From: Macrostomum lignano
Lineage: Eukaryota
Assembly: GCA_002269645.1 (NCBI GenBank)
Contig: NIVC01000578.1
Coordinates: 200,549-264,548, forward strand
DNA length: 64,000 nt
Reading direction: 5' to 3'
Made by a program: the position numbers and the translations under genes. Below are positions 13,019 through 38,968 of the stretch, piece after piece. The notes below the pieces were generated by a model that was not told the origin of the DNA, made no database searches, and saw only the letters and a program-made list of their open reading frames with translations. Numbering within the stretch: the stretch's first letter is position 1; every line of letters begins with the position of its first letter.

Positions 13019-13423
13019 ATTTTGAAGTGTGAGAGTTCCATTTAAACTTTATTTTTCATCATTTCTATTTAATGATCGCGTCTTTTGCTTTCTGTTTCTT
13101 TGTTGCAAGAGGTGACTCGTTTAGCCTTGGTAGTTTTTTTTTGTTTCCTAGTGACAGTTACTTATTGGCCTTAGCGTCATCGTGTTATTTTCTCTAAATC
13201 GCTAAGTGTTTTGTCACCAACCTTTTGTATGTTTCATGTCATTTATTACAATTTTTTTTCATTGTTTGTCGAATCTTTAGTGATGATTGGTGAAGGAATC
13301 CTCAACCTTTTCAATGGTCTAAATTTTCTTATAATGAAGTCATTGTCATTTCCTGTGTTTGTTTTTTTTGCGTTTTTTTTGGAATTTTTGGTATCGGGAA
13401 AAATGTGATCATTTTTGGGGGAG

Positions 13424-13780: not shown

Positions 13781-13785
13781 TCACT

Positions 13786-17125: not shown

Positions 17126-18070
17126 CAGGCAGCCAAGATCGGCATAATATGCCCGATGGGAAATATCAATAATTGTCCTTCAATTGCGTCAAATGGCACA
17201 TAGAAAACAGGTAGAAGTAGAATGACAAAATAACTGTCGAGTATTACGAGTACTAAAGACGGTTGCAATCGACGGTTTTTGTGCAGATTATGCTGATTAG
17301 CATAATTGTGCCGTAACAATGCCAACTGTGTCGCCGGTCAAGAATCAGAAAGAACACTTAATTTTATGTTGCATTTGTGCATAAAAATGAAGTGGCAAGT
17401 GTTGTATGCCCGAGTATATACGAGTTAGTAATATTGTATTATAGTAATAATATGTAATCAGTTTAGATTGAAAAAACAAAAGCAAAACAAAAACGGTGAG
17501 ATATAACGAAAAAAAACACGCCATCACGGCAAACAGAAACAGACAAACAGAAAAGCTTGAAAAGATAAACTGCACTGAATAAATGGATTGATTTAAGTGT
17601 ACATTTTGTGGGATGGTCAGTGTGGAGCAGGGCACCTAACGGCTGACGGCAGCCGTGAAATCCGTGAAGTCAAACCCCCCCTGCTGTGCTGAGCCGGTGG
17701 ATCCACCGTGGACCCCACGCTCGGCCAGCTGTACTGGCTGTATACTTGAGATTTTATTATTGCCCTTTGCGCTACTCTGTTTGAGTAGTACATATTGAAT
17801 GTAACATATATAAATAAACATAAAAAATATATCAATACATGAATATAACAATATAACAAATATAACAGGAAACCTAAAAACATTAAATTTGTGTTTTTCA
17901 TGTTTCTGAAGCGCTACTTGTATAGTGATGCTAATCAAATTAATGTCTACTGACTCTACATGAAGGACAACTGATAATCTAATACTATATAAGTTTACTA
18001 AGAGTACTGTGGTAAAGTTGCGCGTCTGAGAAAAAGTAGAATTAAGAAGGTGAGCGCTATCATTTTTTAT

Positions 18071-18110
18071 GCGACATGTTTCGCCTCGCGTCAGGCATCG
18101 TCAGGCTCTT
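18071..18110 (-). ncRNA. Minimal hammerhead ribozyme motif in the 3' pLTR
   Basis: Minus strand reads GAGC-CTGACGA-TGCCT-GACGCG-AGGC-GAAA-CATG-TC-GC: core CUGANGA, 4-bp stem II, GAAA, palindromic stem III ACAUGU, GUC cleavage triplet. Confidence 0.75.
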
Positions 18111-18588
18111 AAAATTAGTAACGATTTATTTGTTCATTAATATTTAACAATTAAGACTAAGAACGGGTCGATAAAAGTCAGAAATGTATATAAATTAACA
18201 GTAGATTGTACAGTCCGACGGAGAGGTCACAGAGTTGCAATGAGGGGAGAGAGAGAGAGAGAGAGAGAGTGAGATGAGCACAAGTGTACACCTAGAATAC
18301 TCTAAGGAGGGCACTGGCACCGTGATTGGCAAGTTGCTTATTTAGGATTGGTTTACGCGATTTTATATACAGGGCTTCAAGCACTTTTAGTCTGTACTCA
18401 TTTGAGCACGTATGGATGGTGGAAAAGTTTTTATCTATTTGGCTGTCACAGCATTCTTTGCATATCATCAGGTGGTCGTGCACGGCCGACATCTTTTGCC
18501 TATGTTCTCTACTTCTCACGTACAGGTGTCGGGTAGTTTCACCTATGTAGGTGATACTCTGGTCGCCAGAGCATTGAAATTGGTAAAT

Positions 18589-18637
<49 letters not shown>

Positions 18638-18771
18638 CTCATTGCAACTCTGTGACCTCTCCGTCGGACTGTACAATCTACTGTTAATTTATATACATTT
18701 CTGACTTCTATCGACCCGTTCTTAGTCTTAATTGTTAAATAAAAATGAACAAATAAATCGTTACTAATTTT

Positions 18772-18811
18772 AAGAGCCTGACGATGCCTGACGCGAGGCG
18801 AAACATGTCGC
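18772..18811 (+). ncRNA. Minimal hammerhead ribozyme motif in the inverted pLTR
   Basis: CTGACGA 18778-18784, stem II GCCT/AGGC, GAAA 18800-18803, GTC 18807-18809. Confidence 0.75.
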
Positions 18812-18896
18812 ATAAAAAATGATAGCGCTCACCTTCTTAATTCTAAGTTTACTAAGATTATTCAGAAAAGATGTTAAATTTGTCAACACAATTTGG

Positions 18897-19080: not shown

Positions 19081-19690
19081 CTGGAATGAGCAATGAGCCA
19101 GTTCACTTAGAAATCTCCAAATGAAGAAATCGTTGAAGAATTTTCATGCGCCATGCAAATTAAGATTCTGAGTAGGTTTGGGGAAAACAAAAAGTCTAAC
19201 AGCAATTGGGAGGCCAAACCCCCAGACGTTTGGAAAACGCCTTGTGCGGCTCTAAACTCAACTCCTCACCCCTCGCGTCTATATTGATCGCAAGACACAG
19301 TTCACTCCTATAGTGTTGGAGCGCCTTCTCCTACTCTCCACCGCTCCTCCTTGAACTGTAGGAAGAGCTGACGTGGGTGGAAGCAAGTGACTTAAACTGG
19401 GGACTGACTTCTGTAGGCCCTGACAACAAGTCTCTTCTATTAAGATCTCTTCTATTAAGATTGGATTGCCTATCTCGGCCTCCCATTGTTTAATTTTTTC
19501 GTTCTCTGCCAAGCAGCTCCTGGCTTTTGTCCCACAGGCGCTCGATTGAGAGCGCAGTGCCGTTCCGCTATAGTGACTGCCGCAGCATCCCCATGCGGCT
19601 TAAAGCCTCTTCAACTTGACTTTCCAGAATGAGTTAAAAAGGAGTCAAGCAGATAAAGTCAGCTGTCAAAAGAACCAAAGCTGTCAGAAA

Positions 19691-20487
19691 ATGTACCTCG
19701 CAGGCCCTCTGCTGCTGTTGCTTCTGTTTGGCTGCTGAGTTCGGCTTTGTCGGCTGCTACATAGACAACATACCCTGGGGTTTCAGGGACCTCGTCGGAC
19801 TGGACGGCATGTCCTCCATAGGGCCCCACACGGTGATCACAGAAAAAAATTGCGTGATCAGGGACGACATGACGCTGCAGCTGTGCAGCCAGATCTGCGA
19901 GCTGGGCAACTTCAAGTACTTCGGCGCGCAATACAGTAGCGAGTGCTTCTGCGGAAACTCGTACGGAAGTCAGGGCGGTGCTCCAGTGAGCGACTGCAAC
20001 ATGAACTGCGCTGGCAACGCTAGCCAGATCTGCGGCTCTGGAGGCCGGAATTCGGTTTACCTGCAGTTTAACCACCGTCCCAGTGAGCAGCGGATTTCTC
20101 GCAATTTTTGTGGCTGAGGGATTTGATAGACTAAGGGCTAACTGACCCTCTATGAGACTACTGACACTGCCCGATGACATTTCACACTTTACATCACACT
20201 GACTTTTCAAGCATTGATAATCAGCTGAACTGAACTGCATTTTGCTCATTGCAGTCGGCAACAAGTTCGTCGAAGCTCCCCGCGTCTACCTGAACGCGAC
20301 CTCCTCCGGCGGGCCCTTCTACCGCACCTTGCAGCCGGCTAGAAGCCTCATCGACTGCCTGCTGGGTTGCGATGCGAGCTGCCAGGCTACCCTGTTCCAC
20401 CAGGGTACCTGCTACCTGCTGAAATTGCCGGCTCTGCCGCAGCAGCTGGTCGGCGTTCATGGCGGGAAGTTCTTTGTCCGTGGCTAG
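19691..20487 (+). pseudogene. WSC-PAN copy 2, frameshifted in the signal peptide
   Basis: ATG at 19691. There are 37 nt to the TTG GCT GCT GAG anchor versus 48 nt in copy 1, an 11-nt loss. Exon 1 to 20082 and exon 2 20255-20487 are otherwise open, with GT/AG intact. Confidence 0.8.
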
Positions 20488-21794
20488 AAGACCTGATGAT
20501 TCAGCTCGTACTTGCGCTGCGATCAACTTAATGGCGCTTTCTGTTAATCCTTGGGTTAATCCCTTAACCTGTGGCTTTTCAGTTCTCTTAAAAACCTTGG
20601 TTTGTTTCTAATTTAACAAAATCCTTTATGCCAGATCCACTTTAAGTTTTTTAGTTTCAGTAATTACAGTTCGAATGTTGTACCTTCGAAACCAAACAGC
20701 TTTGTGAGCACTGACTATGTGTAGATACGCTTCAGTTCAAGTTGCAATTAAAGTGAAAAGGAATAGGAAACCGATACTAAAAATCTATTGATTTTTCTAG
20801 GAACTGGGTTTGAACTTTTTGGATCTTTTCGCAACCCCAGCAAAATAAATATACGGGTCTCGGCTCCTCAGCCACTTTCTCCAGCATCGACAAAATGCGC
20901 CTTGCTTGTCGTCTTTGAATTGTACATGTACGTGGCAGCGAGTTTCTCGAGCCTGAAAGTCGCTGCCTGCACCGCAGAACGGCTTGGAGAAAAATCTGAC
21001 AATATTTTATGGCGTGAGCGTCTAGCTAACTGAAAACTAAGAACTAAAAACTTTAAGTACACCTCGGTCCTTCAGTTATTTTACGCATCTGTGGGGCAAG
21101 CACCTGGACCAGACTAACGCGTAAATTCATTGCTTTTCAGTAAAAATATTTGTAAGAGTACTGATAGTCTTTAATGCTCGCTAAGGCGTATTCAACATGC
21201 CAGTGAAGTATGAGACAGACCAGGCCTATGATCTAAGCCCTAAGGTCTGCAATGCTTCACGCCTGCCCCCATCTTCAGCAGGCAAAGGCTGGCGGGAGGT
21301 CTGCACCCTCTATAGTCGACCCAGGGGTACTCGTCCCCGCGAGTGTTCAAGGCAGACCCTCGGGCTGCTGGACAGACTGGGCTCCGACGCTGGGTACCCA
21401 TCCAGTGGCTCCGGCCGAATTTGGGTATGCAGGTCTGGCTCGCCAGTCCGCAGGCCGTGGTACTGCTTAACGTACCCTCTAATGCCTAAGGTGTTGACCG
21501 TGCCTAGTATTTTATTATTTTCCCCTTATTTTTCATTTATTAATTAATCATTTTTTATCATAATTAATCTTTCATAACAAAAATAATAAAAATATTCATC
21601 GATTACTTGATGCAAACTATGTTGCGCAAACTGCTGTAACGCAAAGGGTTTGCTTTACGTTGTGTGTGAGTTACGTACTATTTTATTGCATCCTGCTGTA
21701 ACACATTCATCATAGAAGCATTTATTGTAACCACCGATCTGCTTACTTTCTACAAAGAACGCTCCAGCGAATATTGACATAACTGAATAAGTTC

Positions 21795-22210
21795 ATATAC
21801 GCAATTTCACCTACTATAAGTAGTTTTCACTAGCCTAATTTTGTGTTAATATCGTTGACTACATATCGTTGCCGCAGGCGCACCCTCCCGATATGTACAC
21901 CCTCCCGAGCCGCAGGCGACCCTCCCGATATGTATGTACCCCGATATGTACACCCTCCCGATATGTACCCCGACATATATGCCGCAGGCGACCCTCCCGA
22001 TATGTATGCTGCAGGCGCCCTAAAGATACACCCTCCCGAGCCAAAGGTACATTCTCCCGATATGAGTGTACACTCTCCCGATATGAGTGTACACTCTCCC
22101 GATATGTGTGTACACTCTCCCGATATGGGTGTACATCGATATGTAGTCAACGATATTAACACAAAATTAGGCTAGTGAAAACTACTTATAGTAGGTGAAA
22201 TTGCGTATAT
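21795..22210. repeat. Local palindrome with 74-bp arms at the left end of the long-TIR element
   Basis: 21795-21868 is the reverse complement of 22137-22210. Confidence 0.9.
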
Positions 22211-23070
22211 TTATATAAAAAGTAGATAAAACGTATCAGTATGTGTAAATATCGGTGCATAATGCATATTACCCGCCTGGCCAAGTGGTCCGGCTTTTCA
22301 TCCGGTTTTGGTCCGTATCGTCCGGTTTTTATGCCTTTACCGGACTACCGGAACAATTCGTCCGGTTATCGTCCGGTTTCGAAGTCCGGGTGAAAAACCG
22401 GACAAAAACCGGTCAAAAACCGGATGAATTTTTACTCCGGAATCATACCGGACGAAAAACGGACGAATTCGGCCCAGTTCCGGATGTAGGGACCTGTTTT
22501 GATCCGAATTTTTGTCCGGTTTCCATCCGGAAACTTGTCCGGTCCTAATCGGACAATTAAGCGGACAAAATCCAGATGGAAACCGGACTAAATCTTGCGA
22601 GATCAGTAAGTAAGCCTTCACAGTCTTCACAGTCTACGAAGTGTACTTTTTAGGTATGCATCATACGTACAGGATTCGCTTTAACTCCGCCAATGCCGGT
22701 CCCAAGCCCGGTTGAAAAATGAGGAGGGTTTGGGGAGACGGTCTCTCCAGTAGAAGCCATCTTTCGTATCTAATTTATTATGAAGCTGAATATGAACTTC
22801 AATTTATACAGCAATTATCTGGCTACAATATATGACACTACCTCATGTGTAGGACTACCTCAAGTGTAGGAAAGCAAACAATTAGTTTCGCTATGATAGG
22901 TATCTTGGAGGTATCTTTACTGTGTCTCCAGTAATCTTATAGATAACACTGTCCAATGACCCATACTATGATACCATTGATGATGAGCACTATATGTACT
23001 CTGAAAAACACGACTAACCTTAGCTCCCCAAACTTGCATTGCAGCCCGCACCTAGTGGTTGTCCGTGTCC

Positions 23071-25905
23071 ATGCAGCCCTCAGGACGCAACCGGCGGCAG
23101 TATATGCAGCAGCGAAGGTTCGAGCAGAAGCTAAAAGCTGCCATAAGTAAGGGTCAGCCGTCGCTTTCCCACTCCCCAATTCAACGCGATTCTGCAACTC
23201 TGCAGACCCACGAGCCGAAACCCTCTGGCAGCGTTAATCGTACGGCAGGTATGTACTGTTCATCGAATACATCACATGGCTGCAACGAGAGAAAGTGTTA
23301 CTTTTTACTACTTCTTTCAATTCCTTATACCTTCTCGGGACAGGCGATGGCATTGTCGCGGCAGCCAGCGCCAGCGTCGACGAAGCCGACAGCGACACTG
23401 ACAGCTACGCCAGCAGTGGCGCGGCGCCCCAGGGCAGCGGCGACGAAGCCGACAGCGACACTGACAGCTACGCCAGTGGTGCTGCGCCCCAGGGCAGCGG
23501 CGACGAAGCCAACAGCGACACTGACAGCTACGCCAGTGGTGCTGCGCCCCAGGGCAGCGGCGACCAGGCCGACATCGACGCCAGCGGCGCTGCGTCCCAG
23601 GGCAGCGGCGACGAGGCCAACAGCGACGCCAGCGGCGCTGTGCCGCCAAACTTCGACCTCTTCCAGCACCCATAACACGATGGGGTACTGGCTGAGCCCA
23701 TATACTCCATAGCGCCTGCCATTTGTGAGGTCAATGACTGCGCTATTGACCTGCAGATTCCCCGTGAAAAAGTCGGCCGGCTTTTGGCTACCATCCACCG
23801 CCTCGTCCCCGGCAACAGGTTGCCGCGGACGGCGAAGACGTTGTGGCGGAATATGAAAAAGGCCCAAAGTTGCATCGGCTCCTCAAAGTGCATGACTGTG
23901 TGCAATTCCTGTCGATGTAACTATCCAGGAGACAGCAGCCAGAATGAAGGACTTTGTCGGAACTGCAATTCTCAACTTGTCTCAAATTTCTGGGTGTTCG
24001 ATATCCGTCAGCAAATTAGGACTTACATCGAGGCCTGTGGATTGCTGCAGAATGTCACCTTTCCCGTGGACTTCCAACAACCGGAGGATTGCATTCACTT
24101 CTCAACCAGCCAAATGTATGCCGAGTTTATTGAGGCGATTGAACCCCAGGATCGAATGGACTTGTCCTACACCCTGAGCTCGGATGGCTTCTCGCTGCAT
24201 ACTACCAGCCGAGTTGAAGTCTGCCCCGTGTACATCAGCATCAACGAAGTCCACGACCGCTTCAAACTGAAGTATGTCGTCATTTGTGGTGTATGGGCGG
24301 GAAAGAAGAAATTGCACGCGTCTGCCTTCCTTCCTTGTCTCATCGGCGCGTTGAATAACCTGCGCACGCGAGGCGTCACCTACTTAGACGACGAATCTGT
24401 GCGACGGACAATCCGGTTTCATCCGCTTCAGACCCTCTTCGACGCACCCGCTCGGGCCGACGCTCTTAATATGAGGCACTGTACGGCCACTTACGGTTGC
24501 GACAAGTGCTACATTGCCACACGTCTGCACCCATCCGGCAGTGGTCGCTACTACGACGTGGAGATTACTCCCGCAATGCTGAACGAAGCCGCCCGTCTCG
24601 GTTGTGTGCAGACCGTCGTACGCAGCATGACCGACACGTCTCATCTTGCTGAACTGCATCTGCAACGGATACCTTCTGATCCGAACGGCGACGTCCTTGG
24701 AGTCCGCGGTCATTCTCCCCTTGGCGAAATTCTCGGATTTTACTTCGTTCGAGGCTGTCCGCCGTGTTACCTGCATCAGCTCAACGTCGGCCTATGCAAA
24801 ATGAAGATGCTGCAGTTTTTTTCTGTTCGGCGCGACAAGCCTGACCGTGGCTCAGTGTCCGGATTTACACGCGAGGCAGTACCAAGTAGACGCCCGACTG
24901 CGGAATCTTTACGTGCCCGATTGCGTGCAGCGGCATTCCGTTCGTCCGCTCAGTGACCTACGCAATATGCGCGGTCACGAGTTTGAAATGTGGCTCCTCG
25001 CTTACGGGCCACTCGTTCTTGACGGAATTCTACCAAAGGCCCATATGGACCACTTCAAGGTCCTCTCTTCCGCTGTATTTTGGATGACGGCTGACTATGC
25101 GCCCAAAACCGAATTGCGACACGTGGAAATTTCCCTGCGGCATTACCACGCGAACTTGCAGCGTCTGTTTTCGCTACGGGCTCTCACCTACAATGCACAT
25201 CAGGTGTGCTGCCACATGCTGGCCTATGTGCACCTCGCTGGATCCGCGCATCGCCTATCGACTGGCCTCTTTGAAACCATGCACAACCGTTTGGCACAAC
25301 GTCTTCATGGGACCCGCCGCAGCGATGTCGAATTGGTGAATGCTGTTGAGCGCCAGATCGGCAGCATCCAAGCGAGAGCACGACTCCTAGGCCGGCAAGT
25401 TCCACGGCAGCAGGATGAGCGGGACCTGCGCCGCTTTGAGATCCACACCGTCGGGGGCGCTGTCCTTCGCAGGCCGAAGTCTCAACAAGTTGGCTGGCAA
25501 ACCGTCTCGCTGCTGTCTGGCTGGAAAGTCAGCGCGTATCGGCCTGCAGGCGCCAGGAGAGACGCGGCCTGCTTTGCGGCTGTCGCCGACCAAACGTCCC
25601 CAACAGAGTTCCGATTCTGTCGGGTAGCCTCCATCGACGTGGAAGGTGACATCGTCGTGCTGAAGATCATCGTGCTGCCCCTGATGCAACCCGAGCCGGA
25701 CCCACTGGAGTCGCTGGCCCAAGTTCCTGCAGCCTCGGTAAATCGTGGCTGCCGCTTCGTCCACGTTAGGCGACTGGGCTGTGACCCATTCGGTGACCTA
25801 CGCATTGAACCGGTCGCCGTGCGACTCGAGGCGCTTCGTGGGGTCTGCGGTCTGCATGGCCGCAAAATTGCCTTGTTGCCCCATCCGCAATTGTGCTTCG
25901 CGTGA
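23071..25905 (+). pseudogene. CACTA-type transposase (~910 aa reconstructed), one premature stop and one frameshift
   Basis: Predicted exon 23071-23248, GT-AG intron 23249-23343, exon 23344-25905. TAA at 23673 and a +1 shift in the T7 run at ~24816-24822. Motifs LSSDG, PVYISINE, FDAPARA, YGCDKC, YLHQLNVG, GHEFEMWLL, YNAHQVCCH, FETMH. Confidence 0.85.
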
Positions 25906-27044
25906 ACATTAACTGCTTCGATGCTTCGTTTGTAACTTCTGTTTCAATACATGTCCGTTTATTTATATTATGCTACGCTAGGTAAGCATAAGCAATTCAA
26001 TAAGACAGGGAATTAACTCGTGTAGAACATATTCTGCTTGTTTTGCTGTATTATATTATGTATGCGTGCCGTACTAATAATAATAAAATTTATCAAAAAA
26101 GACACTAATTTTGGTTGTACACTATTGCGTTGACTTCAATTATTAATGTAAATTTATCAAACATGGGTCTAATTGTAGGAGCATTAAAACTTATGGCAGA
26201 AGTTTTTGTTGAAATTTGTTATAAAAACTCAATCGGATGCTTTCGTAAAAATCAGGTGCTAGAAAAATCGTACTCAAAGCCATTTTGATCCCAGCGAGTA
26301 AGGCTACTCGTAAGTGAAAGTTGAAGATCTTAGTAGACTGTTTAAATAACGGCATTTACATTTATGGCTGTGTATAGATACAATGTGTAAGACCTGTCTG
26401 GGAAGCAAATGTAGTTTGATGGCTTGCTTAATTAAGGGTTATTTTTAAACGACGACCAAACGTAGTTTGAGCCCCTATTAAAATTGATGAGCGCCGAAAT
26501 CCACACGCCTCACGCCTTTGCAGCTGCATGGCAACTGGGCATTCTGGGCATTTCCCGTCATGGGCGGCCGGACGAAGCGATACCCAGTCCATGCCTCTAG
26601 CAGATCTTCGATCCTGCATCCAAGAAGCCGAACAACGAGGCGTGCGCGTGTACACGAGTACTCGTAGTCTGCTACTCTTCGTGGAGGCACTGAACGTGAT
26701 CGACTCAGGTTGGCTGGCTACAAGGCACTGTTTCCGACGAGACCTCATCAATTAATGCTTTAATTAACGCGCCGGCCTGCCGGACGTTTCCAGATATTCA
26801 AAAAGGAGCGACATTTCTTCTTGAGAGCCCAACACTTTTCAATGTCGACTCCGATTTGCACGGTCGCTACTCGTTGTCTATCGCACCAGGGCAGATTCGG
26901 CGCGTATATCCACGCCCAGTGGTGGGTAATTCATTTATGTTCCGGTTTGCTTCCATCAATGCGTCGTTTCAGTCAGTCAAATCACTTCAGTCAAACTCGC
27001 GGCACTTATTAGTTTATTTATTTATTCGCACGCACGCCAATATT

Positions 27045-27368
27045 ATGGTCTGCACCGTCACATACTTACCACTGCAGGAAGCCACGTTCGTGAGCTATTA
27101 CGGACCCGAGTCGAGCAGCTACCGTGACTACACGATCGTGTCCACAGAGGAACTTCCGACTAGTCGTCGACCATGTCAACTCGGTTCGCCACCACCATCC
27201 AAAACGCCTGACAACGGGTCCCAAGAAAGCACCGAATGGAACATGTTTGACACCCAGTCTGAGTCCCAGTCTGCGCTGGAGGTGCCGGCATCTGCAGTCT
27301 TGGAGTGCGTCTGCGGCCAAGGCAATTTCCTCGGCTGCACTTGGTGCAGGCGACATGCTAAGAAGTAG
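27045..27368 (+). CDS. Small ORF inside the CACTA element with a C-terminal CxC...CxxC cluster, function unknown
   Basis: ATG at 27045 after an AT-rich stretch. GC-richer coding-like composition. Ends ECVCGQGNFLGCTWCRRHAKK. Confidence 0.35.
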   Translation: MVCTVTYLPLQEATFVSYYGPESSSYRDYTIVSTEELPTSRRPCQLGSPPPSKTPDNGSQESTEWNMFDTQSESQSALEVPASAVLECVCGQGNFLGCTWCRRHAKK

Positions 27369-27943
27369 AAAGTTTTACAGTAGAAACTATTTGGCGGTCT
27401 ATTATATCCTAACGTATAGTTTGGTTGCCGAATTGCATTTTCTGCATTGCAGTTCTTCTGTCAAGTTGTGGCTTACCCTGATAATTATTAAAGCTGACAT
27501 CATTATTGAGAGAACTGCTGAGTTCTCTATTCGTGAAAATAATTGTGTCTATTTTTCTTTGCTTTTAATACTGTTTTAAGTTTCCATAGAAAGGCTTATG
27601 CGCTCCTCTCCTCTCCTCTCTCCTGTCTCCTATATCCTCTCGATCCTCTCTCCTATCCTCTCTCCCTAGCTCTCCTCTCTTCTCCTCTCCGCCATCCGCC
27701 ATCCGTTACGGACAGTTCGCTTTCGTATTCAATTCAGTTGCATTAAGTCAGTTAAGTCAGCCACAGAAATTTTTACAGAATGTACATCACAAAACGTTTC
27801 CCGCAGCACAACTGCATCGTTATGGGCCACTTAAGTAAATCCAAAGAAAAAAATAAAAAACAAAGTGAAAAAAACGAAGCGAAAAGTCTAATTCGAAACG
27901 GACAACGCAGGCCACCGTCACCAAAAGGCGAAAACTGGAAGCG

Positions 27944-28358
27944 GCTGCTGGTTCCGCTGCTGCTTCGACAGAGCCGCCGACCTCGGCTCTACTGTACGTG
28001 CTGCTGGTTCCGCTGCTGCTTCGACAGAGCCGCCGACCTCGGGCTCTACTGTACGTGCTGCTGGTTCCGCTGCTGCTTCGACAGAGCCGCCGACCTCGGG
28101 CTCTACTGTACGTGCTGCTGGTTCCGCTGCTGCTTCGACAGAGCCGCCGACCTCGGGCTCTACTGTACGTGCTGCTGGTTCCGCTGCTGCTTCGACAGAG
28201 CCGCCGACCTCGGGCTCTACTGTACGTGCTGCTGGTTCCGCTGCTGCTTCGACAGAGCCGCCGACCTCGGGCTCTACTGTACGTGCTGCTGGTTCCGCTG
28301 CTGCTTCGACAGAGCCGCCGACCTCGGGCTCTACTGTACGTGCTGCTGGTTCCGCTAC
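27944..28358. repeat. 57-bp tandem repeat, ~7 copies
   Basis: Unit CTACTGTACGTGCTGCTGGTTCCGCTGCTGCTTCGACAGAGCCGCCGACCTCGGGCT. The frame STVRAAGSAAASTEPPTSG runs in frame into ORF 28369. Confidence 0.95.
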
Positions 28359-28368
28359 TTCTGCATAC

Positions 28369-29924
28369 TTGCAGTACGACTGCGTGCCGTACAAAACAGA
28401 GGGTACGAGGAGATTCTTTTTATTCAAATATTCCAACTATCACGAGAAAACCGATGTGGTCTCCACGGACGACATTGTCGGCCGCAAACGCGATTCGTCA
28501 ATACCCGTCGCTGTGGGCAGCGAAGTTCTTATAATCAAGGCTAAAGTCAATAGAACTGCGGCCAAAAAGTGGCATGGCACCCTGGTGCAGGGGCCATTCA
28601 CAGAAAGGAATGCAGCCGCACGTGCAGCTTCGTTAACTAATGTTCACACCACGAGTGTCGAGCTGCCAAGGACTTGTGGCTCCTGCCGCAGCTTTTCTGT
28701 CGAAGTCCAGCGCCAGTTGGCGCCAATAGAAACTTTACGTGAGTAAATTTTTACGTTTTTAGGCATACATACACCCTAAGCCAGGATCCTCAACAGGACA
28801 ATTCCCGCATATTTATAGGGGGACAGCTAAAATCGGCGACTCAGAAGGAGACCCAGCTGCGCGAAGATAATCAGTCGCTGACGGAGCAGCTTTGCGTATC
28901 CAGCAGAATGGAAAAAAGTCTGCTGCGCCAGTTGGAGGCAGAGCAGCGGCGCAGCACTAGATTGGTAGAAGCTGCGCAGCGCAGCAACTCGCTGCTTCTC
29001 AAATCGTCGGACATCCTCTGCCACGCCACGTCCGGCCGGGTAAAGTCCGGTACCAGTCAGTCCCTGACTGATCGGGAAACTTCTGAGTCAAGCATGCAGA
29101 GGGGAGGAGCCGTTGGTGCAGCGGCGTGTGCCCATCAACAAGACGAAGATGAGGCCGATGAGGTCGATGAGGATCTCAGTTTCACATGCGAACAGAATCT
29201 GTCTGTTGCACAGACTCGTGCGCTGCTGACTGCAAGCCAGAAGGCAGCAAACTGTTCGGAGACCTCGTCCTCGTCCGGCTACGTGTCGCTCTCAGAGACG
29301 CAGCCGTTCGTCAAGGTGCAATTTCAGCGGCGCGCGGATCTTCAAAGGCGACTGGAAGAATTCGGAAAGGTGCCAGCCCCGTCCGATGCGGAGCACGCAG
29401 ATGTCACGTTCATTCGTGCAACGGCCCTGCAGGCCCTCCTCCGCGCTCTGCTGCGCACTATGTTCACGGACGAACAATTTGCTAGTTCTAGCATATCGGG
29501 TCGCAACTCAGAGGTGGCAAACCCAGGAAAGATGGCTGCGGTGAGAGTCTGGCTGGCCGAGAACAAAATTAGCTACACGCAAGCCAATCTAAACAGGGCG
29601 TTCAATCGTTGCAGTGATACGGCTAAAGACCACCTCGGCATCTCGGGTATCAAAAAGCGTGCAGCTATGTCCGTCCCAATGCGGTCCAAGAAGCCCGGTA
29701 CAGGTGCCGCTGCAACGAAGCGCTCAAAGAAGGCCGCCCAGAGCAGTGAGAGCACAGTTGTTGTCATCGTGGACGATCCCAGTAGCGCCAACCAGAACAT
29801 CTATCCGTCTGCTTCGAATGCTACAGTTGCCAGTTCGGCCGATGCGAGCGCCGGCAGTTCGACAGCCAATTCCGGCAGTAGCGGCACTGTCGATATGCTG
29901 CAGGAACTGTATTCGAATGATTGA
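28369..29924 (+). CDS. CACTA accessory gene: coiled coil + BEN/DUF4806-like domain (5' end uncertain)
   Basis: An exon to 28738, a phase-1 GT-AG intron 28739-28818 and exon 28819-29924 join in frame. LLRALLRTMFTDEQFASSSISG...NPGKMAAVRVWL resembles the BEN-domain helices. Confidence 0.65.
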
Positions 29925-31011
29925 CTGATTTTTATAGTTCAGACTTTCTTACTTTCCTACGTTTTGATCGTATGAGCAGGTTGAAGCAACGTTTTGAGGA
30001 GTGTGAATAAACGGAACGGGAGTCGACGTAAGATTGTTTCTTTTAGTGTTTTTAGTAATTCAATGGACAAATCTACAGTACAGGATATTGTGTTTCATGC
30101 GTTTAATTTGTTTCTTTGTGAACTATTTGTGAACTATGGCTACAGTAGTAGCAGCAGCAGCAGTAGTAAACAAAATCAGCATTCTGTCTTCCGGTTTTCG
30201 CCCGTTGTTGGTCCGCTTCTTCATCCGGTTCAGCTCCACATTCGCACTCGCCCGGTTTTCGCCCGCTTTTGGTCCGGCTGTTGGTCCGGGAACCGCCCGG
30301 ACGAACTACCAGGTGAAATTCCAGATGAGCACCGGGCGAAGCAACCGGACGAAGTCCTCAAAAAACATGTTCTCGTCCGGATTCCTAACCATTTGCGGAC
30401 AAACGAGATACGAGAAAATACATAACGCACCGGATGAAAACCGGCTGCAAAGCCGGATTTGCAGCCGGATGAAAAACCGGACCACTTGGCCAGGCGGGTT
30501 ACGAAACATATAGTTGTACAGTCATAAGCATATGGGCAGCAAAAAACACACAATGTAGGTGCATATTATCGATATATTTGCAGAAAAGTAGGTGAAATAT
30601 ACAAAATAATACAAAGCAGGTATATATCGCTTATTAGTGTAGTAGGTGCTTGTAGATGCTAGTATAATAAAAACATAGGTTGACTCATACGCACAATAGG
30701 GCTCTCCCAGGACAATAGTAAGAGATACGCCCCCGCATTCCTCCCCAGCGCCGCGACCAAGGGACCGCGGGCTGAGTAATGTTTCGAGGGGATCCCAATG
30801 TACAGTGCAGGCAGAGAGCTATTTTCCTACCCAAATGGGGTTTTTATTCAAGGGACCCCTCACCTAGTACAGTGCGGGCAGAGAGGAGTAGCAGAGAGCA
30901 ATAGAGACCGCCCCATGTACAATGCGCTCCAGGGTTGAGGTGTCAAATGGGAGTTTTTGATCCCCCGCCCCAATGTACAGTGCGCTCCAGGGTGTCAAAT
31001 GGGAGTTATGA

Positions 31012-31740
31012 GTGTCCCCTCACGGATACAGAGACTGCACAAGCAGAGTGCATTCCTCCCCAGGGCTTCCAAACGATAGTTATGAAGGACCCCTCACCAA
31101 GTACGGTGCGGGCGGGGTAACACGCCCCGGGGGGGAACCCCACGCGATCCTTATCGCTCACTCGCGAAAGCCATACGGACGGCTGGCGGCCCCATACACC
31201 CTCTTAGTCATGGAAGTGTGGAAGGACGGCTTCCCAGCAATCTATTTGAGCGAGCCAGAGTGGAAGAAGCTCGAAGCTTTGCGCCCTGACCTGGAGGCTG
31301 CCGCCCGCCTTCACGTGGACAAGCGGGTCGTGCTGGGCAATTTCAAGGCGGTCGAAGCTTCACGGGGGCGGATTCGTTTGCGGCGCAATTGGCTCAATCG
31401 GGATCCAAAGTTTAATTGGCGCTACATGATCGAATTCACGCCGGAACTGTGGCACCGGATGCTTGCGGCCGGTTTAGACAAGCTCTTCAAGCCGGCACCC
31501 GAGGCCCCGCCGCCGGCAAAGCGAGCCAAGACAGAGACCCCTCCAGTAGCCAGGACTGAGGAGGAAAATCTCCAGGACGTTCTCCACGACTCCAGGTTGT
31601 GGGTCTCAAACCCTACCAATCCCCGCCCTGGGAAAATCTGTTTGACAAGAGTCAGCGCTGGTAGTTTCCTATTGGCTCACACCACCCCGCGGGGCCCCTA
31701 TATAACTAATCTGTCCTGTCTTCAGAGAGCCAGGCCCTAA
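31012..31740 (+). CDS. Putative tandem PC4-like ssDNA-binding protein with an NLS-like motif (start uncertain; first ATG ~31210)
   Basis: Two units each end in a PC4-like I-x-[LF]-x2-E-x-W-x2-[LM] helix: AIYLSEPEWKKL and IRLRRNW...MIEFTPELWHRM, linked by VVLGNFKAV. NLS-like PPAKRAKTE. Confidence 0.5.
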   Translation: MSPHGYRDCTSRVHSSPGLPNDSYEGPLTKYGAGGVTRPGGEPHAILIAHSRKPYGRLAAPYTLLVMEVWKDGFPAIYLSEPEWKKLEALRPDLEAAARLHVDKRVVLGNFKAVEASRGRIRLRRNWLNRDPKFNWRYMIEFTPELWHRMLAAGLDKLFKPAPEAPPPAKRAKTETPPVARTEEENLQDVLHDSRLWVSNPTNPRPGKICLTRVSAGSFLLAHTTPRGPYITNLSCLQRARP

Positions 31741-31946
31741 TTCCTAGCTCTGATACTATACTCTCTCTCTCTCTCTGTTGATTCCAACATGTCCCGCCGA
31801 GCTCTATCCACCCTCTGGGATAATAATCGCCCCCCCCTGAAGAGTTAACCTCCCTCGACGGTGAAATACCCGAACATATAATCCCCCTAGGCACAGAAAA
31901 CAACGGAACTGATAATTAGGGGGCTGATATATCCTTGGCTTGGGCT

Positions 31947-32777
31947 ATGTGGGCTATGACCTATGATAGCGACACTGAGTCTGAAGTTTTCGACCTCCCG
32001 CTGCTGACTATCGGAGGGGTTGTGAACGGTGCCCCTGCTGCTGCCGCCTCTGATTTGACCGCTGCATCTGCCGCCCTCTTTGAGGTCTCTGTTGATGAGC
32101 TGACCACTGCTGCGACCGTCTCTGCCTCTGCTGCCTCCACTGTTGTCTCGTCTGCTGCCGTCTCTGCCTCTGCTGCCTCCACTGTTGTCTCGTCTGCTGC
32201 CGTCTCTGCCTCTGCTGTCTCCACTGTTGTCTCGTCTGCTGCCGTCTCTGCCTCTGCTGCCTCCACTGTTGTCTCGTCTGCTGCCGTCTCTGCCTCTGCT
32301 GCCTCCACTGTTGTCTCGTCTGCTGCCGTCTCTGCCTCTGCTGCCTCCACTGTTGTCTCGTCTGCTGCCGTCTCTGCCTCTGCTGCCTCCACTGTTGTCT
32401 CGTCTGCTGCCGTCTCTGCCTCTGCTGCCTCCACTGTTGTCTCGTCTGCTGCCGTCTCTGCCTCTGCTGCGCCCGTCTCTGCCTCTCGCCTGGCCTCAAT
32501 ATCATCAGCCGCTTCGCTCCTTCTCTTTGACGATGAGGACGAGGATATGTCCGGGGAGATCGCCATGGTTCGTGAGCGCCTTCCCCGCATTGTGGCCTCA
32601 TTTTTCCGCGGGGACATTGACTGGCTGAGGTCTCGCCACCCCGGCGGCCTGCCCTCCCAAGACACCTTTGTCAGAGCCTTTAATCGGGTTCTCGATACCT
32701 TGGTGTCGAAGGGGGCTGGTCTACGGGAGGTGTTGGAGGCGGAGACGTTACACCAGGATTGGTTAAATGGGGCGTAA
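31947..32777 (+). CDS. Unknown ORF with an internal 42-bp (14-aa SAAVSASAASTVVS) repeat
   Basis: Open frame across ~8 repeat units (32120-32470), with non-repetitive N- and C-terminal parts. The C-terminus looks helical. The stop overlaps the start of the next ORF. Confidence 0.4.
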   Translation: MWAMTYDSDTESEVFDLPLLTIGGVVNGAPAAAASDLTAASAALFEVSVDELTTAATVSASAASTVVSSAAVSASAASTVVSSAAVSASAVSTVVSSAAVSASAASTVVSSAAVSASAASTVVSSAAVSASAASTVVSSAAVSASAASTVVSSAAVSASAASTVVSSAAVSASAAPVSASRLASISSAASLLLFDDEDEDMSGEIAMVRERLPRIVASFFRGDIDWLRSRHPGGLPSQDTFVRAFNRVLDTLVSKGAGLREVLEAETLHQDWLNGA

Positions 32778-33274
32778 TTCGTATGCCTCTGACTCGGAGG
32801 CGTACCTGGCAGGTCCGGGAGCGCGCCCGACTGCGTGGGATGAGCCTGCTGCAGCTATCTGGCCCTCCAACTGGGAGGAGCACCTCTCGCTGGTGCGCTA
32901 TACGGCGTCTCTACGCCTGTGGCGGCTGGGGGATCTAGATTTGGTAAGATATTACGCGGCATTTACATTTCATGTAATCATATACAAGGCTTATATTCTT
33001 TCTACATTGAATTTTTTAATTTTCACATTGACAGTCGGCTGACTACTGCTTCGAGAGCGCTGAGGAGGAGGCCGCGTATGAGACAGCCCTGAGGGAGCGG
33101 ATGGAGGTTGACTCAAAAGGGGATTTCTCTTTATACTCTATTACTCTCTGCCTGCACTGTACTTGGGCCTCGCAACACACTGGGGATCCCTCAACTTGGA
33201 TTCTACTTGGAGAGTTACCCTCTGGGGATCCACTAAAACCCCCATTTGGGGGCTTGGGGTGGGAGCTGCGGTAA
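32767..33274 (+). CDS. Unknown spliced ORF
   Basis: Exon 32767-32943, AT-rich GTAAG...ACAG phase-0 intron 32944-33034, and an in-frame exon from 33035 (SADYCFESAEEEAAYETALRERME...) to TAA at 33272-33274. The 3' part runs into subterminal repeats. Confidence 0.35.
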
Positions 33275-33853
33275 AGTTTGACTGGAATTCTGTATGTGGT
33301 CTGTTACTCTACCTCCACTGTACATTGGGGCGGGATCCCTTGAATAAAAACATGGGGAGGAATGGAATTTCTCTATGTTACTCCTCTCTGCCCGCACTGT
33401 ACTAGGTGAGGGGTCATTGGGGCGGGGGATCAAAAACTCCCATTTGACACTTCAACCCTTTGACACTTCAATTTGACACTTGTGTGTTTTTTGCTGCCCA
33501 TATGCTTATGACTGTACACCTATATGTTTCGTAATATGCATTATGCACCGATATTTACACATACTGATACGTTTTATCTACTTTTTAAATAAATATACGC
33601 AATTTCACCTACTATAAGTAGTTTTCACTAGCCTAATTTTGTGTTAATATCGTTTACTACATATCGATGTACACCCATATCGGGAGAGTGTACACACATA
33701 TCGGAAGAGTGTACACTCGTATCGGGAGAGTGTACCTTTGGCTCGGGAGGGTGTACCTTTGGGGCGCCTGCAGCATGCATATCGGGAGGGTCGCCTGCGG
33801 CATACATGTCGGGGTACATATCGGGAGGGTGTACATATCGGGGTACATACATA

Positions 33854-34440
33854 GGTACCGACGACCTGAAGAGACGACGAGGACTGGCCTGGGCCGCATT
33901 TTGATCTGTGCGCTCCGTGCTCCAATCTGAGGCCCTGGACGACGGGCTCAAGGCTCGGCTGTTTCAGACAGTCGTCGAGACTGTCCTGTTGTACAACGCC
34001 GAGACTTGGACCCTGACGGACGCCTTGGAGAGGCAGCTGGACGCTGCGCATGCGGCAATGCTGCGTGCGGCTTTCGGAGTGCGCAGCGGCCCAGGCAGCG
34101 AGACCAATGCCGCGCTCTACACTAGGGCGCGCCTGACGCGGCCTTCTGACCTGCTGCGCGGGCGGCGACTTCAACTGGCTGGCCATGTCATCCGGTCGGA
34201 GGCCCGCTGTCCTGAGCCGCTACACGACGTGCTGCTGCTCAAGCTGCAGGGACCGCGGAGGCGAGGCCAAGGGCGAACGGTGCGATACCCTGACCGACTT
34301 CTGAGTGACGCTGGCGCCCCGGACCAAGCAGGGGGATGCGACTTCCTGAAGGCAATGGCCCACAGACGCGCTTTCTGACTGCTCCCCCTTTCTGGCTACT
34401 GCGTGGGCGGCGGGAGCAGTACCTTGTTGTTGTTGTTGTT
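33854..34440 (+). mobile_element. 5'-truncated RTE-like LINE fragment inserted in the right TIR
   Basis: RRRGLAWAAF*SVRSVL..LLYNAETWTL..LQLAGHVIR, (GTT)n tail 34425-34440, near-perfect 7-bp TSD ATACATA/ATATATA. Confidence 0.9.
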
Positions 34441-34980
34441 ATATATATCGGAGGGTCGCCTGCGGCTCGGGAGGGTGTACATATCGGGAGGGTGCGCCTG
34501 TGGCATGGGCGCCTAGATGGCGCTTGGCGCGGCGCGCACGCCAGCCAATGAGAGGCGAGGAGGGTTGACACCCACCCACCTCCAAAAGGGACCTTACGGG
34601 GTCATTTAGTAGTACGAGCTAAGTAATGTGCTAAGATTTTCATAAAACTAATTATATTGTGCGTATTACCTGCTTAGCCTAGTATTGATACAAGTATTGT
34701 AGTTAGCAGGGACGCAGTGGGAGGATTTTGATTTGGTGGATTTTCATAAATTGCTCATTGTTAGGCTTTTTCACTGGATGCACAAAAGGATAAAAAATAA
34801 ATTAATGTTTTTATATTAATTGAATTGCATTTATCTGCATTTGAAGCGGCATTTGCAAGGGCCCCAAATATATTGTGATGAGAAAAGGGAACAAGGGATC
34901 AGGTGGGAGCAGACGCGAGGGGAGCAATAGTGAAGCTCATCAGAGATGCGGTGCGGCTCTTCGCTGAATCAATAATAACA

Positions 34981-35231
34981 GGCGGGCCCAAGGTGGCCGG
35001 GGGCAGTGACCCCCCACGAAAATATATTGCAGCATGGTAACAATGTACCACCTCCAAGGTAGGAGTAAATAGCTTGCTAATGCCGCCCCTCTCTCTATCG
35101 CTATAAGGCGCACTTTCCCGTGTCCCTTTGCTAGTGCTATATAGTTACAGCCTTGGCGCCCCCTTAGCACTGGATGGCGCCCTTGCAAACATCGCCCCCC
35201 CAAAAAAAAACCCAAAAATCCTGGGCCCGCC
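34981..35231. mobile_element. Possible short MITE
   Basis: GGCGGGCCCA at 34981 and TGGGCCCGCC ending at 35231. No TSD established. Confidence 0.3.
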
Positions 35232-35814
35232 ATTAATCAGTAATAGCCTCGAAGTGCATATTTAAACAAATCCGTACCTTCTTTCAGTCGGCAGCTTCCT
35301 GAATTCATTCTTGGTGTGCTGCCGGGTGTTTACCGGGAAAACTAAAGCTGATGTGTGCAGCAGTTTCTGTGCTGTGGTGTATTGGGGTAAAAAAAGGGAA
35401 TCGAAGACACGAAGGAGCACTGCTGTCACTACTTATAATTGAATAATGGATCAGTGATAAAAATTGAGTCATTTATTACAGATCGTTGGGATTTTAGTGC
35501 CTGGTTTGCAGTCATTGAAAGAAATTGTTTTTTGTTTTGTTGTGCTGTAAGACTTTTTAAGAATTGAACTGTCAAACTGCAGCCATCAATCAAGAAGTCC
35601 CAGTCTCCGCCCATACAAAATGCCACCTCACTCACCGGGAATCCGCCATCACCGCTGCTATTCCGCATCGGAGACGTCGCCGACAATCAATGGGAGCTGT
35701 CTGCAGGCCATCTGCATCCGGTACTCTTCGAGTCTTGTCTGCGAACTTCGAATTGCAGCCGCAGGAAATCCTCGCAAGCCGCTTTTATCCGCTTCTCCTT
35801 CAGCAGGCGCCGCG

Positions 35815-36412
35815 CCTCCTGCTCCTGCTTCTGCTTCTGCTCCTGCTTCTGCTTCTGCTTCTGCTCCTGCTTCTGCTTCTGCTCCTGCTTCTGCTTCTGC
35901 TCCTGCTTCTGCACCTGCTTCTACTTCTGCACCTGCTCCTGCTTCTGCTCCTGCTTCTTCTCCTGCTTCTGCTCCTGCTTCTTCTCCTGCTTCTGCTCCT
36001 GCTTCTACTTCTGCTTCCTGCTCCTGCACCTGCTTCTGCTCCTGCACCTGCTCCTGCTTCTGCTCCTGCTTCTTCTCCTGCTTCTACTTCTGCTTCTGCT
36101 CCTGCTCCTGCACCTGCTTCCTGCTCCTGCACCTGCTTCTGCTCCTGCACCTGCTCCTGCACCTGCTCCTGCTTCTTCTCCTGCTTCTACTTCTGCTTCT
36201 GCTCCTGCTCCTGCACCTGCTTCCTGCTCCTGCACCTGCTTCTGCTCCTGCACCTGCTCCTGCTTCTGCACCTGCTCCTGCTTCCTGCTCCTGCTTCTGC
36301 TCCTGCTCCTGCACCTGCTTCCTGCTCCTGCACCTGCTTCTGCTCCTGCACCAGCTCCTGCTTCTGCTCCTGCTTCTTCTCCTGCTTCTGCTCCTGCTTC
36401 TGCTCCTGCTCC
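35815..36412. repeat. Degenerate (CTGCTC/CTGCTT/CTGCAC)n low-complexity array
   Basis: Read directly. The poly-L, PASA and SR ORFs are artefacts. Confidence 0.95.
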
Positions 36413-37990
36413 GCACGGTACCACCTGATCGACTGATCACCGCTCTTAAACCCTTCGCAATGTTTGCAAGTGTTGCGTCATGTTACAACAGTAACTACTA
36501 TTGTTGTGGCACGGTTGATAGAACTACAGATTTTTCGAGGACAGTTATTTGCCGTCAGGTATGGAAGCCCAGAAGGAAGCTCAGCGCAAATATTTCACTG
36601 AGCGGCTTAAGGGCATTCAGGGAGGGCGACTCCATGACGCAGCCCCAGCCGCTTGCATCCCTGCAAGTCAGGTTTGATTTCGGGGTCATGCACAGCACAG
36701 AAGTGCTGCTGGGGACCCTCTTTGATATGCAACTCTTTTTGTAGCTCCGTGGGCCACCATAGGCGAAATAGGTATAGGCAACACTTGTGAAAATAAAATA
36801 TACGATCATACTGCGAACACAAAAAGTTTGCAGTCAAATGAAAGGGAATTTTTAGCTTTCCAATGACTTTAAGCTTGTTCGATTTTAGGCATGCATTATA
36901 AAATCTATAGCCAAAATATCGCTACTTTTTGGTTGCACCTCGTATTTCAGTTTTTCATACCAAAATTTTATACCAAAACAGCCAAAAAACAGTATTTTAC
37001 GAGCGCAAGTCTATGATTCATCGGCTGCTCATGCGTGAAAACTTGCCGTGAAAGCGCAGCGCAGTCTTCTGTGGCATGCAAGCGAATGCAGACGCTGAGC
37101 TGCCTCCTATACTGCCAATCCCAGCCTCACGCCGAGCTTAACGCTTGGAGACTCGTTTTTCCAGAGCTGTGAGTTGAAAATGCATCAACCATGCGACAGC
37201 AGCCACAACAGCTCAACTCTGCCTATCCCATCTGAGACTTTGAGCGGCAGTTTGCCACCCAAAACAGTCTGAAAATGTACCTCGCAAGCCCTCTGCTGAT
37301 GCTGCTGAGTTCGGCTTTGTCGGCTGCTACAGGGACAACACAGATGATGCCAGGGACCTCGACGGACTGACCGGCATGTCCTCCATCGGGCCCTACGCGG
37401 TGAACACAGTTGAAAGAGGCGTGAACAGGGCCGACATGACACTGCAGCTGTGCAGCCAGATCTGCGAGCTGGGCAACTTCAATTACTTCGGCACGCAGTA
37501 CAGCAGCGAGTGCTTCTGCGGAAACTCGTACGGCAGTCAGGGCGGTGCTCCCGCAAGCGACTGCAACATGAACTGCGCTGGCAACGCTGGCCAGATCTGC
37601 GGCTCGGGAAACCGAAATTCGGTTTACCAGCAGATTAACCACCGTCCCAGTGAGCTTTCTTGGCTTTGTTTTCAATTTTTAACAAGGGGGTGCTTCAAAA
37701 GTAATGAGCCCCCCGATTAGAAAACGCCCTTCCGCAGCAGATATAAAAAGCAAACTTATCCATATGGCAGCTGAACATCAAACTGTCACGCATGCTACGC
37801 GAAACTTAAGAAATGGTAACGTAGCCTCCGCCGCACACAACAACTCGGTCAAATTGGGGGATCAGCTTGTCAAGTTCCTCCTCCCTAGCTCATTTCAGTA
37901 GCTCGATAAATAAAATTATTGCCGACAACTTCAAAAAAAGAATGAAAAGCACTTCAGCACGCTCCTTTCATTAAATTCGATAGAGAGCGT

Positions 37991-38195
37991 AAGTATGAGA
38001 TAACCCCCCCCCCAGATTTGTTTCTATGGCGTATAGAATGGCTGAGGATGCGTTTCTAGGCCGAGGCGTTTGTGGCCTACCTGTAATTAGGCATAATGAT
38101 AGATTATTCAGACTCAGAGGTAAGGCTTCGCCTCGGCCTAGAAACGCATCCTCAGCCATTCTATACGCCATAGAAACAAATCTGGGGGGGGTTAT
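37991..38195. repeat. Palindrome with ~70-bp arms and a ~60-bp spacer
   Basis: GATAACCCC..CAGATTTGTTTCTATGGCGTATAGAATGGCTGAGGATGCGTTTCTAGGCCGAGGCG and its reverse complement at 38128-38195. Confidence 0.9.
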
Positions 38196-38968
38196 CTTTT
38201 ACTTGAACCTAAGTGTGGCTCAGCCAGGTGATCCCAAATCTCAGGGGGGTGTTATCTTATACTTGAACCTAAGTGTGGCTCAGCCAGGTGATCCCAAATC
38301 TCAGGGGGGTGTTATCTTATACTTGAACCTAAGTGTGGCTCAGCCAGGTGATCCCAAATCTCAGTGGGGGGTGTTATCTTATACTTGAACCTAAGTGTGG
38401 CTCAGCCAGGTGATCCCAAATCTCAGTGGGGGGTGTTATCTTATACTTGAACCTAAGTGTGGCTCAGCCAGGTGATCCCAAATCTCAGGGGGGGGGGTGT
38501 TATCTTATACTTGAACCTAAGTGTGGCTCAGCCAGGTGATCCCAAACTCAGGGGGGGTGTTATCTTATACTTGAACCTAAGTGTGGCTCAGCCAGGTGAT
38601 CCCAAATCTCAGGGGGGGGGGTGTTATCTTATACTTGAACCTAAGTGTGGCTCAGCCAGGTGATCCCAAACTCAGGGGGGTGTTAGCTTATACTTGAACC
38701 TAAGTGTGGCTCAGCCAGGTGATCCCAAATCTCAGGGGGGGGGGTTATCTTATACTTGAACCTAAGTGTGGCTCAGCCAGGTGATCCCAAATCTCAGGGG
38801 GGTATCTTATACTTGAACCTAAGTGTGGCTCAGCCAGGTGATCCCAAATCTCAGGGGGGTGTTATCTAATACTTGAACCTAAGTGTGGCTCAGCCAGGTG
38901 ATCCCAAATCTCAGGGGGGTATCTTATACTTGAACCTAAGTGTAGCTCAGCCAGGTGATCCCAACTCT
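38185..38968. repeat. ~60-bp tandem repeat, ~13 copies
   Basis: Unit TTATCTTATACTTGAACCTAAGTGTGGCTCAGCCAGGTGATCCCAAATCTCA(G)nT, with a variable G run. Confidence 0.95.

Follow-up and report, generated by a model that had tools for sequence, protein, structure and literature searches.

A 3.8-kb stretch of the Macrostomum lignano genome, interrupted by two later insertions, was characterized within 64 kb of contig NIVC01000578.1 (positions 200,549–264,548; hereafter the window, numbered from its first nucleotide). The stretch is best read as the decayed remains of a foldback-like repeat element that lacks a transposase, has inverted repeats of ~450 bp and carries a PC4/Whirly-like gene. The fuller form of this reading, an old, decayed copy of a multi-copy, non-autonomous foldback-type class II element of the Macrostomum lineage, was given a probability of about 0.5, a value limited by unproven mobility, there being neither a target-site duplication (TSD) nor a second DNA copy. 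A first inspection of the same DNA (the original prediction) had proposed a coherent, transposase-free unit, bounded by inverted repeats and with genes of its own, and the present analysis supports that proposal. The element is unusual rather than revolutionary, and a single copy does not suffice to fix its class.

All comparisons of arms and core were made with the pieces of the element kept apart; the repeat scan covered positions 21000–35500, and blastn of the separate pieces covered the whole window. With both nested insertions left out, the pieces total ~3.81 kb. The left arm (21870–22271 and 30502–30553) and the right arm (33480–33853 and 34450–34505) were 91–98% complementary. The repeat scan resolved this into inverted pairs: 22041–22272 with 33531–33762 (232 nt, 95%), 21929–22114 with 33668–33853 (186 nt, 95%), 21870–21925 with 34450–34505 (56 nt, 98%) and 30499–30553 with 33480–33534 (55 nt, 98%), the inner arms being separated by 2926 nt. 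Ungapped pairing of the arms was 95–98% and gapped blastn gave 91.6% across 344 columns, the sole large difference being one more 21-bp unit in the left arm. The outer ~260 nt of each arm consist of degenerate tandem units of 17, 21 and 27 bp. The core of these units, CCCTCCCGATATG, was present in 11 copies in the window, against 0.06 expected by chance, and all 11 lay inside the arms, on the plus strand in the left arm and on the minus strand in the right. The long, internally repetitive inverted arms that had been predicted around a 2.9-kb core are therefore real.

The inverted order continues inward from the arms. Subterminal motifs of the GTACAGTGC type were found five times on the left, all in plus orientation, and three times on the right, all in minus orientation, in agreement with the inverted subterminal clusters of the original prediction. 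The two clusters are mutually inverted and not collinear, and the left side has an extra AT-rich spacer of 226 nt. The genes described below occupy exactly the interval between the clusters. This inverted architecture is far beyond chance and strictly oriented, which supports a foldback-type element.

The left end carries a further feature, overlooked at first inspection. A 77-nt inverted copy of an arm segment, here called segment X, adjoins the left arm from outside (21795–21871; Table 1), and is also a direct copy of 33593–33666. The left end thus forms a 416-nt foldback (21795–22210) with a 77-bp stem of segment X and a loop of tandem units, for which the predicted folding energy as single-stranded DNA was −114 kcal/mol (z −17.6). 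The right flank held no outer counterpart of the 77-nt copy; a degenerate segment X candidate beyond the right end was indistinguishable from shuffled sequence. The outer copy would stem from snap-back copying at a free DNA end.

Since this foldback is self-contained, it could itself be a small foldback repeat, and the arms might then have arisen when a common ~450-bp repeat inserted twice, independently and in opposite orientations, on either side of an unrelated 2.9-kb segment. Homology between the arms runs ~115 nt past the foldback, however, to 30553 and 33480, and the core has inverted motif clusters at both of its ends. Moreover, blastn found no solo arm and no further copy of the core or of the immediate flanks elsewhere in the 64 kb. 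Because the inverted symmetry extends beyond the arms to the motif clusters next to the genes, we regard two separate insertions as very improbable.

The arms had been predicted to be broken by two younger insertions, and the arm pieces indeed pair across both. The insertion in the left arm is an 8.2-kb DNA transposon (22272–30498), for which the uninterrupted right arm provides the empty site. Its termini read CCCGCCTGG...CCAGGCGGG; they start with CCCGCC and not with the CACTA pentanucleotide, so that its earlier naming as CACTA was not borne out. Its 3-bp TSD and its subterminal repeats are of the CACTA/CMC type. Its largest open reading frame (ORF) gave only a sub-threshold Pfam match to DUF1258 of the Mirage group (E 0.0064, 16.5 bits against a cut-off of 33.1), and no PDB relative was found. 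DUF1258 represents the Mirage transposase group, which is sister to CACTA Transposase_21 (PMC3985635). On the basis of this match and of the place of the Mirage group beside CACTA Transposase_21, ‘CMC-superfamily transposon’ is a fair tentative label, while CACTA in the strict sense is unsupported. The transposon has coding tandem repeats of its own at 27944–28356 (57 nt × 7.3, 99%) and 23372–23644 (60/48-nt units). The insertion in the right arm (33854–34449) is the 3′ part of a non-long terminal repeat (non-LTR) retrotransposon related to the ORF with a reverse transcriptase domain (RVT_1) at 47772–48824. The divergence of the arms (5–9%) together with the two nested insertions indicates that the copy is old.

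The original prediction also described a compact cargo of three ORFs. Three same-strand ORFs do exist in the core, but they are fragments of two genes, A and B, in one alternatively spliced unit, both damaged here. Two genes rather than three are recognized because M. lignano protein forms span the ORFs. P0001 (165 aa) corresponds to ORF1 plus a short tail, while P0006 and P0007 (~314 aa) start just 3′ of ORF1 and cover the second and third ORFs. In P0004 and P0005 the tail of ORF1 is joined by splicing to the gene B protein. A single 91-nt GT..AG intron (32944–33034) is removed in P0004–P0006 and kept in P0007. To judge from these proteins, the intact unit of M. lignano is shown to be alternatively spliced, yielding the gene A protein, and the gene B protein either alone or fused to the gene A tail.

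Measured against these proteins, the copy in the window is damaged. It keeps just the C-terminal part of the first PC4 repeat of gene A, and no upstream exon for the missing N-terminus was present anywhere in the 64-kb window. Aligned with P0006 by tblastn, gene B showed two frameshifts and one stop within the frame, and its terminal stop was gone. Counting the frameshift in the tail of gene A, the two genes carry three frameshifts; one stop has been gained in frame, one has been lost, and an N-terminal segment is missing. The frameshifts, the stop changes and the missing segment lead us to regard the window copy as pseudogenised. A 14-aa repeat protein had been predicted as a separate ORF. 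The repeat itself is real (42 nt × 8.5), but it is an expansion within gene B, at a site where the M. lignano proteins have merely a short Ala/Ser stretch.

No enzyme that could move the element was found in it. In agreement with the original prediction, neither the ORFs of the core nor Pfam searches gave any signal for a DDE transposase, a family B polymerase, an integrase, HUH/Rep (NS1-type) proteins or a capsid. Nor was there any match to a protein-primed family B polymerase (pPolB), a retroviral-type integrase, a packaging ATPase or a maturation protease. Genes A and B take up ~2 kb of the core and motif clusters fill the remainder; the non-genic part amounts to just about 1 kb, which leaves no space for an enzyme gene. 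As the element has no enzyme of its own, its movement would depend on a partner acting in trans.

The identification of a PC4-like ORF in the core proved correct. A profile of the gene A family matched the C-terminal domain of human PC4 in the PDB (4usg_A, E 9e-9), as well as 1pcf (E 9e-8) and 6ycs (E 1e-7), and Pfam PC4 (PF02229) was detected in three of eight family members (best 1.1e-6). An AlphaFold2 (AF2) model of the relative P0013 (pLDDT 80.8) contained two bbbb-alpha repeats, and Foldseek searches of the PDB with this model returned MRP1/MRP2, PC4 (TM 0.77, rmsd 2.2), MoSub1 and Whirly (WHY2). Gene A is therefore modelled as a tandem PC4/Whirly-like protein, and its product is predicted to bind single-stranded DNA or RNA. 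It is the structure model alone that points to the second PC4 repeat: the second half of gene A aligned with the first by hhalign at E 0.05 and a probability of 1%, its profile had no PDB match, and a PC4-like character by sequence was rejected for this half. An AF2 model of the window's own gene A, made from a four-sequence alignment, reached a pLDDT of 40 and was dropped from the fold search. Members of the family share an NLS-like (nuclear localization signal-like) basic stretch and a conserved P-W-x-N-L tail.

Gene B has an acidic, Ser/Ala-rich middle and a C-terminal half that is probably helical. It had no relative in Pfam or the PDB beyond low-complexity noise and no known fold. An LXCXE/‘Oncoid’ assignment of the conserved C-F-E-S-acidic tail was discarded, the motif not being an LXCXE.

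Among 738 viral matches in a Foldseek search of predicted viral structures, the best was ‘MOSUB’ of a Branchiostoma (lancelet) adintovirus, aligned over 162 columns across both repeats (E 7.9e-4, probability 1.0; TM 0.59/0.49, 15% identity). This match bears on a rival reading, by which a linear double-stranded DNA element of the Polinton/Maverick/adintovirus kind was reduced by internal deletion to a miniature derivative, or gave rise to a satellite. Such a derivative would have kept its terminal inverted repeats (TIRs) and an early-type unit with a single-stranded DNA-binding protein, and would need full-length relatives for replication and integration. TIRs of several hundred base pairs suit Polintons, a single unit with compact alternative splicing recalls viruses, and the left snap-back foldback implies that a free linear DNA end once existed. 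Nevertheless, the core encodes no pPolB, integrase, capsid, ATPase or protease, no 6-bp TSD is present at the outer ends, and the element measures 3.8 kb, compared with 15–20 kb for Polintons and adintoviruses. Scans of viral contigs in IMG/VR with P0001, P0006, P0011, P0013, P0014 and the arm motif gave no match at the sequence level. With 15% identity the MOSUB match may reflect only a shared tandem PC4 fold, and the text of the adintovirus paper does not discuss the MOSUB gene. We consider such a derivation doubtful. Its more specific form is a shade more doubtful again; in this the element would be a satellite-like miniature of a flatworm adintovirus/Polinton-type element that has retained its TIRs and an alternatively spliced, MOSUB-like early unit, with the left snap-back as the trace of a free linear form. 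The original prediction had offered both a foldback/MULE-like (Mutator-like element) and a Polinton/adintovirus-like derivation; the structural resemblance to foldback elements stood, and the viral derivation gained one new lead, real but thin, from the structural match to MOSUB together with the snap-back end.

Close relatives of both genes were found only in M. lignano (searches with ORF1 and, for the downstream ORFs, with P0004). There the family numbers about 19 sequences, which fall into at least 10 clusters at 90% identity and have mutual identities of 63–95%; some members are truncated, and others, such as P0008 with its zinc-knuckle N-terminus, are chimeric. This divergent, partly chimeric, multi-copy pattern of predicted proteins is typical of genes borne on dispersed repeats. 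It fits an element of the foldback type, as does the position of a decayed copy amid other repeats. The UniRef entries P0001–P0010 carry source names (Replication endonuclease, ParB, DDE_Tnp_1_7, HTH CENPB-type, BSD, Nanos-type, TEX11) for which no named domain was found in the sequences; these names look like annotation artefacts and were given no weight as evidence. Exact-protein look-ups for P0001, P0004, P0005, P0009 and the ORFs of the window returned nothing on record, Rfam had no family match in 20000–36000, and scans of JGI metagenomes with P0011 and the 22-nt arm motif gave no match.

Three more distant relatives of gene A came to light when P0001 was used as query in an exhaustive HMMER search: P0011, found in a Namib salt-pan metagenome, and P0013 and P0014, from Logan assemblies. 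Gene A homologues occur in the runs SRR31628425, SRR31628394 and SRR23592405. Each of the three relatives lies on a short contig that has no gene B, and each has the look of a stand-alone gene; gene A could for that reason be of host origin. In the salt-pan contig that encodes P0011 (L004), three ~85-bp repeat units with a TGTAC core (100–380) lie just 5′ of a TATAAAA box and the gene; they recall the motif cluster upstream of gene A.

These relatives raise the alternative that nothing at the locus is mobile, and that a pseudogenised paralogue of a lineage-specific host gene family lies here in a local inverted duplication or palindrome, the motif clusters being promoter- and terminator-proximal repeats. 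The distant homologues are indeed small, stand-alone, TATA-preceded genes, in L004 with upstream repeat units as well; no TSD was found; and the region around the locus is made up of genes in tandem array. M. lignano assemblies also carry a recent genome duplication, which inflates copy counts. A plain host gene family is harder to reconcile with members that differ over 63–95% identity and include chimeric and truncated forms, with TIRs made of tandem subunits and motif arrays strictly oriented on both sides, with inverted symmetry wrapped tightly round one gene unit, and with the decay of the locus in the window. We regard this explanation as rather unlikely.

Several observations weigh against a foldback-type mobile element. 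No TSD was detected with either left boundary (21870/34505 or 21788/34505): direct repeats of ≥4 bp were absent at or near the ends, save for chance GGCG(C) matches inside the repeat. This test is weak, since the left flank has been rearranged by the 77-nt inverted copy, and it bears out the original prediction that the outer termini and TSD could not be fixed from this copy. Mobility and superfamily are both inferred from one DNA copy; no second was obtained, and termini and copy number are unproven. The subterminal regions of the two sides are not collinear, the distant relatives of gene A stand alone, and no autonomous partner is known for the element.

If the element is nonetheless of the foldback type, its parts suggest how it would have worked. 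Long TIRs of tandem units and oriented subterminal arrays enclose one transcription unit of ~2 kb. The repeats and motif arrays would be cis-acting sites for an enzyme supplied in trans by an autonomous partner, and the PC4-like protein would either coat single-stranded DNA intermediates or act as a PC4-style transcription cofactor for the element. After its arrival the copy was invaded by the CMC-type DNA transposon and the non-LTR retrotransposon, and frame-breaking changes built up in it.

Among known systems, foldback elements of the Drosophila FB/FB-NOF type and long-TIR elements such as Galileo are alike in having arms of several hundred base pairs made of short tandem subunits whose number differs between arms. 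Long TIRs of short subrepeats, the mark of foldback elements, are present here. The central segment of foldback and Galileo elements may likewise hold genes, and most of their copies are without a transposase. Unlike them, the element shows no 7–9-bp target duplication and has no known related transposase of the MULE/Phantom or P type, and PC4-like and acidic protein genes are unreported for foldback and Galileo families in the literature searched. Pack-MULEs and other gene-carrying non-autonomous TIR transposons similarly place long TIRs around transcribed, spliced, non-transposase coding sequence, but the cargo here is a complete two-gene unit conserved in its family, in contrast to the assorted host gene fragments of Pack-MULEs; the 9–11-bp TSD of MULEs and Pack-MULEs was absent in the search at the outer ends. 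Parvovirus- and bidnavirus-like linear single-stranded DNA elements differ in two respects: a hairpin-capable palindrome occurs here at the left end only, and no ORF for NS1/Rep (HUH-SF3) is present.

At the protein level, the first repeat of the gene A family matches the C-terminal domain of PC4/Sub1, and the two bbbb-alpha repeats modelled in one chain resemble those of Whirly and MRP1/MRP2. Gene A departs from these proteins in having both repeats in one small polypeptide, the second unrecognisable by sequence. As far as sequence searches go, Macrostomum and three eukaryotic contigs are the sole sources of the gene A family. A literature search found no report of a PC4/Whirly-like single-stranded DNA-binding protein in cut-and-paste transposons.

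If correct, our interpretation describes a transposase-less inverted-repeat family that maintains its own conserved, spliced genes, including one for a tandem PC4/Whirly-like protein. It would also bring to light two-repeat PC4-like proteins as a small family not described before, whose nearest viral look-alike is an accessory protein of an adintovirus. That likeness would provide a concrete, checkable link from small genomic repeats of animals to accessory genes in Polinton-like viruses. Annotation is affected as well: a number of M. lignano entries in UniProt whose automatic names are unrelated (‘Replication endonuclease’, ‘ParB’, ‘DDE_Tnp_1_7’) would be repeat-borne proteins.

Table 1. Parts of the element and its nested insertions, in window coordinates.
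Feature	Position	Strand	Remarks
Extra inverted copy of arm segment X, adjoining left end	21795–21871	.	77 nt, 99% complementary to 22134–22210
Left arm, outer part	21870–22271	+	Tandem 17–27-bp units (21872–22133), segment X (22134–22210), 61 nt more
Nested 8.2-kb TIR DNA transposon, not the element's own	22272–30498	+	35-nt TIRs at 97%; TTA duplication at 22269–22271 and 30499–30501; CCGG-rich subterminal repeats
Left arm, inner part, resuming beyond the nested insertion	30502–30553	+	98% against 33480–33534
AT-rich spacer with TAGGTG-type motifs	30554–30779	+	Left side only; no right counterpart by blastn
Left subterminal motif cluster	30780–31113	+	Five GTACAGTGC-type units, all +
Gene A, tandem PC4/Whirly-like single-strand nucleic-acid-binding protein (predicted)	31210–31740	+	Damaged: N-terminal segment of first repeat absent, one frameshift in C-terminal tail relative to M. 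lignano proteins
Gene B, acidic Ser/Ala-rich protein	31789–33274	+	~314 aa in M. lignano; intron 32944–33034; damaged
42-nt × 8.5 tandem repeat (‘14-aa repeat’)	32116–32470	+	Inside gene B; units 99% identical; in-frame expansion private to this copy
Right subterminal motif cluster	33139–33459	−	Three GTACAGTGC-type units, all −; AATAAA signal within
Right arm, inner and middle part	33480–33853	−	Repeat scan, blastn
Nested 5′-truncated non-LTR retrotransposon tail, not the element's own	33854–34449	+	Ends in (TTG)n; 70% identity to 47826–48285
Right arm, outermost 56 nt	34450–34505	−	98% against 21870–21925

A tandem array of WSC-domain-like genes surrounds the element, with units 1 and 2 on its left and unit 3 on its right; farther out, a BEL/Pao retrotransposon lies upstream and a CNNM-type gene downstream. 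The array consists of three paralogous units that are 80–87% identical (14864–16669, 19246–21024, and 37237–37655 with 39313–39583), each with a cysteine-rich exon that looks like a WSC domain (15360–15794, 19728–20117 and 37376–37720). These units offer no paralogous empty site for the element, because the duplication ends before the insertion point.

The BEL/Pao element (6599–13781) has a gag-pol ORF of 1823 aa (7547–13018) with Peptidase_A17, reverse transcriptase and integrase domains, and it looks young, since its 360-bp LTRs (6599–6958 and 13424–13781) are 99.4% identical. At 18025–18857, a 250-bp inverted repeat (18025–18274/18608–18857, 96.8%) overlaps a minus-strand ORF (18292–18813) that resembles a GIY-YIG nuclease motif and is possibly the remnant of a Penelope-like element. 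Minisatellite arrays with 93–97% unit identity were present at 16672–17135 (period ~76 bp) and 38177–38970 (~60 bp). Extreme strand asymmetry, with GC skew up to 0.83–0.93 and AT skew up to 0.81, marked 40000–42400 and 60000–62000, stretches that presumably consist of purine-rich repeats of low complexity. One gene alone in the window is clearly a host gene, that for the CNNM-type metal transporter, with exons at 50490–52091 and 62574–63578 that encode CNNM, CBS and CNBH domains.

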